Source: Salpingoeca rosetta
Taxonomy: Eukaryota > Protista > Choanoflagellata
DNA: 64,000 nt
Assembly (NCBI GenBank): GCA_033442325.1
Contig: JAWQFM010000027.1
Location: 217,647-281,646, forward strand
Direction of reading: 5' to 3'
Shown: one piece after another, positions 14,937 through 20,279 of the stretch
How the letters are laid out: every line of letters starts with the position of its first letter
How positions within the stretch are numbered: the first letter of the stretch is position 1
Position numbers and translations under genes: made by a program
The notes under the pieces: generated by a model
Seen by the model: only the letters and a program-made list of their open reading frames with translations
What the model was told of the DNA's origin: nothing
Databases searched by the model: none

Positions 14937-17900
14937 ATGTCCACTCCCGGTATGTCCGTGATTGAGCGTCGCTGTTGTAGACGTTGTGTATATCCGTGAA
15001 GTTGATCGATCACATGTGCACACACTCATATGTGCACACATGTGTTCATTCACACACACACACACACACACACACACACACACACACACACACACACACA
15101 CACACACACACACACACACACACACACACACACACACACCTCACGAACCTCATGCATTGCCGCCATTAGATGATGCCACAGGAGTGGCAGCGTTAGATAG
15201 CCCCGTCCCAAAGCCAAGGTGAGCAAGCAGTGGCGATGTTGACGGGTGTTTCCATGAAGCATTGACTGGCGTTGTTTCGCCCTTCACGAAAACAATCATA
15301 CTCACGCTTCAACCGTTCCTCTTCGGCGCAAACCTTCGCCGCTTCACCCCCTCTGCCCACCTTTGACCTTCCTGTACATGGCAGGCCGCGACCTCGACCG
15401 CGCGGCCGCAACAGCGCACCAAGCGAGTCCTCTGAGGGCGCGCACATGTCGGACGCGGAGCAGGAGCCTGTATCCGATGCCGAAGCAGCGCAGGGAGACA
15501 CCACAGGCACAGACTCAGACGCAGCACCCCCGTACGTCCCGTTGCGTGTGTGTATGTGTGTGTGTGTGTGAGTGTGAGTGAGTGAGTGTGTGTGTGTGTG
15601 TGTGTGAGTTTGGTTTGGTTGGATTTGTATGGTTGTGATGCTGTGTGCTGTTGAACCTGTATGTCGCTGCTCACGCCAACACCCCATTCATTCATACATT
15701 GCCTACATGCACAACCACCACCACCACCACCACCACCACCACCACCACCACCAGCCCGCCGCTGCCGACGCGGGAGGGCCGCAAACCGCTCGAGGAAGAG
15801 AAGAAGAAGATCAGAGTTCGTCGCCGCCCAAACAAGTGAGCACGTGTGCCGCGACCCTGTACTTTTTTTTTTTTGTGTGTGTGTGTGTTGTGTGTGTGTT
15901 GTGTGTGTGTTTTGTGTGTTGTGTGTGGGATTCCTGTGTTTGTTGCAACTGTTTCCACTTTCGTCAATGTGCGTGCATGTGTGTTCGTTTGTCACTCATT
16001 CGCGCATTTCTTTGTGTGTCGTCGTGCCCCCTGCAGATTGAAGGAAAAGCCAACCCGACCACCGCCACCAGCACCAGGTGTGAACGCCACTTGAGCCCTT
16101 GCTCGCTTGTTCGACATGCGCACACACGCGTGTGTGACAATCATTCTCCCTCAATGAATCACTTGCACCTTTCATCTGTCACACACACACACACACACAC
16201 TCACTCACCCACCCACACACACACACACACACACACACACACACACACACACACTCACACACACACACACACACACACACACACACGCACACACTCACAC
16301 ACACACACACACTCACAACCACCACCACCACTCACAACCACTTGTGCAGGGCCAGCGGGCAGCGAGCCGAGCACACCAACGGCAGCCGCCACCACACCGC
16401 CAGCCAAGCCACCAGCACCAACACCATCATCACCAACCAGCGACTCAGCGCCATCAACAACAGCAACAACAACAGAACCACCAGCACCGTCATCATCATC
16501 ACCAACAGCCACAGCCACGACAGAGGAGATGTACGAGAATGTTGATGATGCAGCAAACGCCATCCAGCGCATGTCGCGTTTGCGGCAGTCCCAGACACAG
16601 GGCGATTACGTGGCACCTGTCGACGTGAGTCGTGTTGTGTGTGCGTGTGTGTGTGAGTGTGAGTGTGTGAGTGTGTGTGAGTGTGAGAGTGTGTGAGTGT
16701 GTGAGTGTGTGAGTACAAAGACAAGGAGTGTTGATGGTGGTGGAGAGAGGAGGGATGGTGGTGGGTGGATGTGCGCATGATCTTGGGAACGATGAAGCGT
16801 TCTTCTAATGTCATGCACATGTCATTCCGTGCGTGCGTGTTGCGCTGCCTCCCAACACTCATTTCTCACACGACACCACTCGACACCACCATCCTCCACG
16901 TTACCACACTACCTATGTGCCTGCCAGCCGGTTGTGCCAACAGCAGCGCCACCACCGCGACCGAACCGACGACCACCGCCTACCATCAACGACACCACTC
17001 CGGCTGACAAGGACGCTGACAACGCTGGCGATGGTGGTGATGATGGTGATGGTGTTGGTGATGGAAATGGTGGTGTGCGAACAGCGACAACACACGGCCC
17101 TTCAACAGCAGACGGTGGTGATGGTAATGGTGGTGTGCGAACAGCGACAACACACGGCCCTTCAACAGCAGACGGTGGTGAACTCATCTACGTGTGTGTG
17201 TGCGCCTGCGTATGTGTGTGTGTGTGTATGTGTGTGCAATCGTTTGTGCAATCGTTTGTGCAATCGTTTGTGCAATCGTTTGTGCCTGTGCGTGCGCGTG
17301 TGTGTTGGGAACATGAGTGCCCATGTCTTGTGAGCTCTCATTCCCCTCCCCGCTGTGTCTTCATCTCCTCACTTCACCGTGCGATTGGCGCATAGGCGTT
17401 GAAATGAGCAAGAACGACAAAGCAGCAGCAGCAGCAGAAGCCGCCACCACCGCCGACGAAAAGAGCGGTGATGGCGATGCAGACAGCACGTCAGCAACAG
17501 AGACACAGAAGGCGTCCGCAGCCACAGACGCGGGTGGTGATCGTGCTGCTCAAAGCGACGGTGATGGTGATGATGATGCGAATCCGCCGGCGCCACCAGC
17601 GCCGTACAAAGCAGAGGACGAGGAACAGGTGAGGTGGTGGTGGTGGTGGTGGTGGTGGCTGTTGTTGTCGTGGTTGTCGTCGTCGTAGTAGTGATGGTGT
17701 TGTTTGTTTTGGTGGTGGTGGCCGTATTTCTTGGGGTTCGCTTCATTCAGTCACATACATGCATGCATGCGTGGTCTCGCTGCATGCTCGTCACATCACG
17801 TGCTCACCGCGCATGCTCGCATGTGTGTATGTGTGTATGTGTTTGTGTATCTAGAGCGAATCACAATCGCAACCACAATCCCCGGCTGACCTCGTGGTGA

Positions 17901-20279
17901 GAACACACGCACATACACACACACACGCACATACATACATACATACACACACACACACACACAGGTGCTGATGCACATACACGCGCAACTGCGATGTGTT
18001 AGTCCTTGTTGCTTCGCCCGTGCACCGCCATCTCATCACCACCATCACCACCACCACCACCATCACTACCATCACCACCACCATCATCATCACCATCACC
18101 ACCCCCGTCGCCGTCGTCAGAGCCCCAAGATGAAGAAGAAGCGGTCGTGGCCAAATCTCTTTGGCCGAAAGCAGAAAGCAGCCGACTCAAACGAAGAGGC
18201 AGAGGTGAGAAGGGTGTGTGTGTGTCCGTGTGTGTCGTGATTATGTGTGTGTTTGTGTCGTGTTGTGCCAAGAGCACATAACCACCGCTTCATTGCTTGT
18301 CACCACTCGCACCATCATCACCACCACGCACTCACCATGCACTCACCACGCACTCACCACCACCACCACCACCAGTTCCTGTCGAAGGTGAAGGGTGACT
18401 CTGCGACGATGGGTGTTGCTATTGCCTCAAAGGCGGTGACCAAGACCAAGTCCACAAACTACCTCACCCTGGCGCCAAACGAAAAGCTCGACATCCTCGA
18501 GATGAAGGCCTGCCCTCGGTCAGTTACCTGACACATGCACACTTGCTATCACACGCACACACACACATGCTATCACACACACACACTTGCTATCACACAC
18601 AGACACATGCACAGACATACACAGACACACATGCAAACACATGCAAGTGCCTTGGTCTTGCTTGTTCTGTGGTGCTGTTGATGTGCTGGTATATCACTGA
18701 TTTGTCCCACTCGCTCCCATTCTCACTCCCATCCACCACCACCACCACCTCACGTCCAGCGGCACGTGGGTGTGCAAGAATGCGTCTGGGATGATTGGAT
18801 TTGTGATGACCACGGACGTGACGCTGGATGCGCAGTCCGTTCGCGGGTTCCTCGACGCAATCCCAAAGCCGCAAAGGGTATGTGGCGCTAATGAGGACGG
18901 CTGGTGGTCAGAGGAGTTGTGATTGGCTGGCAACTATTGGTGTGTGCAAGCCATACCTGTCACGCACACACACACACACACACACACACACACACACACA
19001 CACACACACACTACACACACACACACACACACACACACACACACACACACACAATCATGCGCCACGACTGCACGCTGCCGTCGGGCGAGCACAGGCGCAG
19101 GTGTCTGCGGAAGGGCTTCCGATTGAGACGCTCTCATCCTCTGCCGGCATCAACGTGCTGCCCACGGAGCAGTGCCAGATCAAGGCGAAGCAGGCGAGTG
19201 AGGCAACACAGCGGCTGCTGGGCACGCCGGGCGGTGCCAGTGATTCTGACAAGGCGGAAGGTGATGGTGATGGCGATGGCGATGGTGGTGGTGATGGTGA
19301 AGATGATGGTGCCGAGGCAAAGGCGGAGAGTGGTGAAAAGGAAGGAGAAGAAGCGAGTAGTGACGCAACAGCAACAGCGGCAGCAACGGAGGATGAGGCA
19401 AGCGGCGACAAGCAAACCGACAGCGACCAGCAGAAGTCGAGCGATGAAGACACATCAGAAGCCAACACGGACAGCGCCACCGACACCACAACCAAGCGCG
19501 CCCCAAGTCCCGGTTACGACCGTCTCGCGTTCCCTGCGAAAGGCGGCAGCGGCAGCGGTGGTGTTAATGGCGATGGTGGTGGTGATGGTGATAGTGAGGC
19601 CATCCCCGAGGACACATATGCCGTGCCCGATGAGCTGACGGGCGCTGAGCCGTCGGGGCTCATGTACGATGACACGCCAATCACTGCACCGGTTAGTCGC
19701 AGACGTGATGTGTGTGTGTGTATGTGTGCATGTGTGTGTGTTTTTTTTTGTTGTGTGTGTGTGTGTGTGTGCATGCGTGCGTGCATGCGTGCGTGGTCTG
19801 TGTGTTGTATTGATGCGGTTGTTGCTACCTTGCACGAACCCTCACTGTCACCATCACCGCGTCCCTGCCAGGGAGCCGATGACATGTACGAGGCCGTGAC
19901 GGATGCGCTTGGAAGTGCTCCCTCCACCCAGCCCCCGCCCGTCCCAGCACCGCGCAAGCAGAGCGGTATGCGTGTCATGTGGGATGTTTGTGTGTGCGTG
20001 TGCGTGTGTGCGTGCGTGTGGGTGGTCGTGTGGGGGGGGGGGGGTGATTTGTGTGGGTGATTTGTGCGTGTGTGCATGTGTGATTTATGAGATTTGTTTC
20101 AGTGTGCGCGTGTTTCAGCGTCTGTGTTGATTCTGTTGCATTTGTTGCTCACAAGATGTTGCAACGTGTCGTTTGTGATGGCAGAGCCTGTCATGGAGCC
20201 TTTCTACGCACAACCAACCGAGAGCAAGGTGCTGGAATATGGTGGTGGTGGTGATGATGAGGGTGGAAGGGGTTGGTGA
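14937..20279 (+). CDS. Proline-rich, tyrosine-motif-rich adaptor protein with an ADAP/FYB-like (helically extended) SH3 domain
   Basis: About 14 phase-consistent exons from ATG 14937: 14937-14949, 15170-15218, 15385-15531, 15755-15835, 16037-16077, 16350-16624, 16928-17177, 17396-17628, 18121-18204, 18375-18518, 18760-18877, about 19095-19691, 19872-19966, 20185-20279. SH3-like core LTLAPNEKLDILEMKACPRGTWVCKNASGMIGFVMTTDVTLD. The 3' end is uncertain. Confidence 0.75.
17061..17181 (+). repeat. Coding tandem duplication, 2 x 60 nt (DGNGGVRTATTHGPSTADGG)
   Basis: Near-identical direct repeat with period 60 inside an adaptor exon. Confidence 0.9.

Follow-up and report, generated by a model that had tools for sequence, protein, structure and literature searches.

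An expressed gene of Salpingoeca rosetta encoding an ADAP-like protein with a plausible hSH3 domain and conserved tyrosine motifs

The 64,000-nucleotide stretch of the choanoflagellate Salpingoeca rosetta analyzed here (contig JAWQFM010000027.1, positions 217,647 to 281,646; hereafter the window, in which all positions are counted) harbors at 14937-20279 of the plus strand a single expressed gene, which consists of 15 exons (E1 to E15) and encodes 753 amino acids plus stop (754 codons). The encoded protein is acidic (pI 4.2) and mostly disordered, and outside its single SH3-like domain it contains nine tyrosine residues, most of them in acidic contexts. A sequence-only reading of the same DNA had described the locus as an ADAP/FYB-like phosphotyrosine adaptor; the ends it assigned, 14937 and 20279, are exactly the ends of the model supported by RNA, and all peptides quoted in it are present on the plus strand. 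The signal at the locus goes beyond chance, because stranded RNA sequencing (RNA-seq) covers the exons and because an uncultured marine relative, described below, keeps exons and Tyr motifs while the introns differ.

The gene structure was derived from two stranded RNA-seq runs and from the contigs of two older runs of further studies, all placed on 14800-20500. First mates lay on the minus strand, matching an mRNA transcribed from the plus strand. Individual reads backed the joints 14949 to 15170, 15218 to 15385 and 15835 to 16037 in the 5' part of the gene as well as 18518 to 18760, 18877 to 19095, 19691 to 19872 and 19965 to 20185 in the 3' part; the remaining joints sit in repeats and are accounted for by the record coordinates of the RNA contigs X4 (2829 nt) and X13 (1708 nt). 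All 14 introns are bounded by GT..AG, and the exons join in matching phases into 754 codons, of which the last is the stop. Translation starts at the ATG at 14937, upstream of which an in-frame stop is found at 14844-14846, and terminates at 20277-20279. The exons are short and the introns are rich in CA/TG repeats. At the 5' side, the RNA contig of 2829 nt reaches approximately 750 nt past E1, which might correspond to a long 5' UTR, to more upstream exons or to a merged contig. At the 3' side, RNA coverage flips to the opposite strand at 20339-20500, as expected where a convergent neighbor on the minus strand has its 3' end.

Residues 1-377 are disordered and carry most of the proline-rich motifs. 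E1 (14937-14949) contributes the start codon and the residues MSTP and is connected by the RNA joint at 14948/9 to 15169/70 with E2 (15170-15218), which has RNA joints. E3 (15385-15531; contig piece 15383-15531) encodes PRPRPRGR followed by an acidic stretch, and E4 (15755-15835) encodes PPLPTR, a PxxPxR motif that in its longer form PPPLPTR is read across the E3/E4 junction, and a basic KKKIRVRRR stretch. In E5 (16037-16077) the sequence KPTRPPPPAP (RxxPxxP, with RPPPPAP) is found, and E6 (16350-16624) is rich in Pro, Thr and Ser and contains Y172 (EEMYENV) and Y197 (GDYVAP). E7 (16928-17177) encodes PPPRPNRRPPP and harbors a 60-nt tandem duplication (DGNGGVRTATTHGPSTADGG, present twice), and E8 (17396-17628) encodes an acidic stretch with Y356 (PPAPYKAED). 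An ATG in E8 was considered as the start of a second gene and rejected, as the RNA contigs continue from E7 into E8. Within 17629-18120 two introns rather than one are present, since an expressed microexon of 42 nt, E9 (17855-17896; SESQSQPQSPADLV), lies inside; it was counted as an exon because two RNA contigs show a gap of 140 nt in their record coordinates that can be explained only if E9 is included, and E9 is contained in the public protein too.

Several differences between RNA and genome were observed in E6 and E7. At positions 16450, 16550, 16558 and 17125 practically all reads of each of the four RNA runs disagree with the window; the G to A exchange at 16550 would turn Ala into Thr in DDAANAIQ, and some of the reads carry a 3-nt deletion at 16477. 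These mismatches could stem from a difference between strains, from an error in the assembly or from editing. In addition, over 17023-17176, the repetitive part of E7 that comprises the 60-nt tandem duplication and GGTGAT-type repeats, the genome exceeds the RNA contigs of two studies by 39 nt (13 codons), and this shortfall of the contigs might be a length polymorphism or a collapse during their assembly.

Residues 378-492 form a basic island with a net charge of +9 and a pI of 9.8, which is composed of the polybasic sequence KMKKKRSWPNLFGRKQK, of a helix predicted for about ADSNEEAEFLSKVK and of a core that resembles SH3. E10 (18121-18204) encodes the polybasic sequence and the first part of the predicted N-terminal helix (ADSNEEAE). 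The predicted helix is completed in E11 (18376-18518) by FLSKVK, and the same exon encodes a Lys-rich RT-loop region and the initial strands of the SH3; the peptide EEAEFLSKVK is real and spans the E10/E11 junction (18204 to 18376). E12 (18760-18877) encodes the second half of the SH3-like domain (GTWVCKNASGMIGFVMTTDVTLD...). The SH3-like segment as a whole is equally genuine, with EMKACPR at the end of E11 joined in phase 2 to GTWVCKN of E12 (18518 to 18760), a joint present in RNA reads as well as in contigs. It is followed at the start of E13 (19095-19220) by a conserved segment of approximately 42 residues (residues 493-535, VSAEGLPIET...NVLPTEQCQIKAKQASEATQRLL), which is partly predicted to be helical and for which no Pfam family and no chain in the PDB was matched.

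The remainder of E13 (19095-19691) encodes acidic disordered sequence with Y633 (GYDRL), Y667 (YAVPDE) and Y683 (YDDT), all three of which are invariant in the relative. E14 (19872-19965), placed by RNA joints, contains Y697 (DDMYEAV, of which MYEAV is conserved) and PPPVPAPRK, and E15 (20185-20279), the last exon according to RNA, contains Y730 (PFYAQP), Y741 and the stop codon. The six Tyr motifs EEMYENV, GDYVAP, EDTYAVP, LMYDDTP, DDMYEAV and PFYAQP and the four PxxP motifs named in the sequence-only reading are therefore all part of the expressed protein. PxxP motifs are present upstream of the domain in E4, E5 and E7, and YAVPDE, Y[DE]DT and MYEAV downstream of it are conserved (compared as motif types only).

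The gene corresponds to the public protein PTSG_10168 of S. rosetta (559 aa), which is annotated as a hypothetical protein, is named 'SH3 domain-containing protein' in another source and is 100% identical over the query exon. This public model lacks the first 170 residues (14937-16528, i.e. E1 to E5 and part of E6) and begins inside E6 at the Met of EEMYENV. Its last exon differs as well (DVATCRL, acceptor near 20155) and E15 is missing from it; 43 reads back the joint 19965 to 20185 instead. The present analysis corrects this truncated model. Domain searches were carried out with PTSG_10168, which holds the E11/E12 junction, and for the N-terminal 170 residues and E15 each exon was analyzed singly.

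In the Pfam search the sole match of PTSG_10168 was the family PF14603 (hSH3), with 18.1 bits for the whole protein and 21.7 bits for the domain alone (E 2.9e-4, profile positions 16-71), the latter being lower than the curated cut-off of 25.7 bits. Neither SH3_1, SH3_2, SH3_9 nor any other generic SH3 family was found at E<=10, and a Pfam search with the two SH3 half-exons and E10 singly gave no match. Against the PDB, the best match was FYN-binding protein (2gtj/2gto; E 2.1e-5, 27.8 bits), aligned over 86 columns including the helix (query 22-107 to chain 5-90), whereas the chains of other SH3 proteins (NCK2, DNMBP and others) reached E>=0.29 and at most 14.4 bits. A better score with another SH3 class, which would have spoken for a different assignment, was thus not obtained in either search. 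A profile built from the two species gave the same ranking with the N-terminal hSH3 domain of ADAP (hSH3-N) first, and in searches with single exons E12 also ranked ADAP first, yet with an E of 1.2. The C-terminal hSH3 domain of ADAP (1RI9) was not matched in the PDB search. The structure 2GTJ is that of ADAP hSH3-N (PMC2908683), to which identity was only about 27%.

Inspection of the alignment pointed in the same direction. The aromatic residues that form the canonical proline-binding surface are lost: the position of ALYDY reads VAIASKAV, that of P-x-N-Y reads MTTDV (compare KTTAV in ADAP), and a single Trp (GTW) is present. The C-terminal sequence TT-x-V-x-L-D of the domain matches TT-x-V-x-I-D of ADAP. 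In ADAP, I500 and Y559 form a hydrophobic contact pair between the helix and strand 4 of the sheet (PMC2908683). F236 and I295 of PTSG_10168 are aligned with these two residues, and the corresponding residues of the relative, Y and V, are hydrophobic too. Packing of the helix onto the sheet is putative. In the ESM Atlas, a structure search with the Atlas's own model of the protein returned FYB1, FYB1-like (Mollusca) and FYB2 among the first four rows; this result is taken as a lead only. In the Pfam and PDB comparisons the domain stands closer to the hSH3 domains than to any other class of SH3, and at the level of sequence the closest relative known for it is the N-terminal hSH3 domain of ADAP/FYB1; membership in the hSH3 family is plausible.

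Conservation could be followed in one relative. The exon search also yielded a fragment of 67 residues (P0002) on a metagenome scaffold of Tara Oceans (L002, 573 nt), which includes the next exon, and further parts of the gene of this relative were found on a 3068-nt contig from a different ENA assembly (L003). The intron that splits the domain follows ACP[R/K] in phase 2 at an identical position in S. rosetta and the relative. Identity amounted to 54-57% and 67% in the domain exons and to approximately 75% in the segment behind the domain, and KKKRSW..LFGR upstream of the domain is kept as well (L003). In the tail, islands comprising KR..GYD[RK]L, YAVPD, Y[DE]DT and MYEAV are retained amid insertions and deletions; as these Tyr islands are kept in an acidic tail that is otherwise rich in such changes, selection on the Tyr motifs themselves is argued for. 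Additional acidic Tyr motifs that have no counterpart in S. rosetta (DDLYEKP, DDVYACM, EDMYLAM, VYENP and AYEEV) seem to be carried by the downstream part of the gene at 1840-2400 of L003, where the exon boundaries are putative.

ADAP, FYB2 and PRAM1 are regarded as animal adaptors, mostly of vertebrate immune cells, and their hSH3 domain is the textbook example of an SH3 fold that switched from peptide to lipid binding. The hSH3 domain of PRAM1 is located at the C-terminus. The S. rosetta protein resembles ADAP in the best sequence match of its domain (hSH3-N, 2GTJ/2GTO) and in the order of its parts, in which a Pro-rich disordered N-terminus is followed by a basic, non-canonical SH3 domain behind a basic stretch and helix and then by acidic Tyr motifs. 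Its Y[DE]DT motif resembles the YDDV motif of ADAP, which serves SLP-76, Nck, Crk and other proteins as a hub (PMC2908683). With PRAM1 and FYB2 it shares the layout of a single hSH3-type domain plus Pro-rich disordered regions, a likeness of layout and not of directly compared sequences; FYB2 was in addition among the top rows of the ESM Atlas structure search. Differences are evident, too. ADAP possesses two hSH3 domains and an FPPPP (EVH1) site, whereas the S. rosetta protein has one domain and lacks FPPPP. Its predicted helix is acidic and the basic residues lie upstream of the helix, and the conserved segment of 40 residues behind the domain (searched against Pfam and the PDB, not against ADAP itself) is a further distinction. 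Unlike in PRAM1, the domain is followed by another 260 residues, in which Tyr motifs are located, and the organism is a unicellular choanoflagellate.

With regard to membrane binding, the polybasic KKKRSW stretch preceding the domain and the Lys-rich RT-loop region are of interest, as the helix and basic clusters of hSH3 domains bind acidic phospholipids and the binding of proline peptides is lost (PMC8152464). The S. rosetta domain is basic like these lipid-binding hSH3 domains, and by analogy the basic composition of the module fits a lipid-binding hSH3 surface. The central module, consisting of KKKRSW, a short predicted helix and the non-canonical SH3 domain, would therefore most likely tether the protein to the acidic inner side of the membrane; this is proposed by analogy to ADAP and PRAM1. 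The N-terminal PxxP motifs would recruit SH3 proteins. Cytoplasmic tyrosine kinases would phosphorylate the acidic Tyr motifs (YENV, YxxP, Y[DE]DT and YEAV), to which SH2 proteins would then be recruited; motifs of the types YxN, YxxP, YEAV and Y[DE]D- agree with what is known of SH2 preferences. That the gene encodes such an ADAP-type phosphotyrosine and proline docking adaptor, which works like ADAP, is the reading we favor, with a probability of roughly 0.55. The label 'ADAP-like' holds for the protein.

The most serious alternative, which we consider possible although less probable, is a docking protein specific to the choanoflagellate lineage, in which a fast-evolving SH3 domain independently lost the canonical residues and came to resemble the hSH3 of ADAP by convergence or compositional attraction and which would still act as an SH2/SH3 scaffold. 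Several observations weigh against the ADAP-type reading, and part of them favors this alternative. The family threshold of PF14603 was not reached, and the Pfam match spans the SH3 core and leaves the helix outside. The specificity of the hSH3 model was examined within the S. rosetta genome (55.4 Mb, 68 contigs, six frames). Here the only six-frame match to PF14603 was a generic SH3 domain of an unrelated gene (L001, G000:C6:1926917-1930096), which scored 26.6 bits on the hSH3 model compared to 141 bits on SH3_1; a generic SH3 domain exceeds the cut-off of the hSH3 model, and a Pfam hSH3 match alone therefore does not discriminate. The target domain itself was not found by this search because it is split by an intron. 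The ADAP/FYB-like adaptor proposed by the sequence-only reading is thus supported in part: the best PDB match, the Pfam family and the order of the parts speak for it, the score under the cut-off and the 26.6 bits of a generic SH3 domain against it.

Conservation is poor in the region of the helix. The helix columns of the PDB alignment with ADAP had low posterior support, and in the relative the helix region contains Gly and, where ADAP is basic, has an acidic or neutral character. AlphaFold2 was run twice, with the one other species in the alignment, and returned mean pLDDT values of 42 and 48, i.e. low confidence; both models showed a helix at approximately residues 223-239 of PTSG_10168, three core strands and a C-terminal helix, with N-terminal pLDDT below 40, and a Foldseek search with the better model gave noise only. 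In the ESM Atlas, NCK reached a TM-score as high as that of FYB1, and by language-model features generic SH3 clusters (0.88) ranked above the hSH3 cluster (0.86). As to the layout, no FPPPP was found in any exon translation, and Pfam recognized a single SH3-like domain in PTSG_10168; a second hSH3 domain is absent. Word-index protein searches detected no orthologue in a named species, the only matches being PTSG_10168 and two exon fragments of the one relative, and scans of JGI metagenomes by protein and by degenerate DNA pattern gave no match. The word-index search is insensitive and limited in length, and the missing orthologues therefore do not show absence. Finally, no phosphoproteomic report on the protein was found in the literature search.

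Convergence is in turn argued against by the gap of 13 bits that separates ADAP hSH3-N from all other SH3 chains in the PDB in an alignment over 86 columns, by the TT-x-V-x-[LI]-D sequence common to both domains, and by the hydrophobic residues at the positions of the contact between helix and sheet. What is unusual in the domain is that it matches no generic SH3 family in Pfam. Within its own genome no paralog of the domain was detected, the next best match being a generic SH3 exon of WW type with 18.6-20.6 bits, and a BLASTP comparison of the domain with the five generic SH3 domains called by Pfam in L001 gave 17 bits over 26 residues. The gene L001 itself, largely a single large exon, encodes a SAM domain, at least five generic SH3 domains (Pfam SH3_1) and a further SAM domain.

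Another explanation would be a disordered SH3 protein with Tyr residues that are not phosphorylated, for example a linker that is based purely on SH3/proline interactions or a membrane-associated cytoskeletal linker. The lack of phosphoproteomic evidence in the literature would agree with it, as would the fact that acidic disordered regions are common in the S. rosetta genome. We regard it as improbable, as four Tyr are invariant together with their +1 to +3 context inside acidic sequence that is otherwise unalignable, and as the motif types fit what SH2 domains are generally known to prefer. Membership in another docking family that combines SH3 with YxxP, such as p130Cas/BCAR1, was rejected as very improbable: several YxxP motifs (YVAP, YAVP and YAQP) occur together with one SH3 domain, as in such proteins, but no Cas-family or other Pfam family was matched, and the SH3 domain is central and non-canonical instead of N-terminal and canonical, with no C-terminal helical bundle.

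A function as an ADAP-type adaptor and descent from a common ancestor are separate questions. Specific common descent of the whole gene with ADAP is doubtful at present, and the proposal of the sequence-only reading that a pre-animal relative of the family had been found is carried forward as a hypothesis. In the literature searched, no paper was found that links hSH3, FYB or ADAP to choanoflagellates or that names PTSG_10168. It is a tentative suggestion that the gene might be truly orthologous to the ancestor from which ADAP, FYB2 and PRAM1 derive, so that a lipid-binding hSH3 domain within a Pro-rich phosphotyrosine scaffold would predate animals. If it were, and this scenario is likewise rather unlikely, such proteins might have linked tyrosine kinases to the membrane and to the actin and adhesion machinery in a unicellular ancestor, and their use in integrin and immune signaling would have come later.

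Given the resemblance of the domain to that of ADAP, adaptors of this type may have existed before animals did. If this is true, the switch of an SH3 domain from peptide to lipid binding and the design of the adaptor would be pushed back to before the origin of animals. S. rosetta, for which genome editing is established (PMC7314544), would then provide a genetically tractable unicellular system for the original role of such adaptors.

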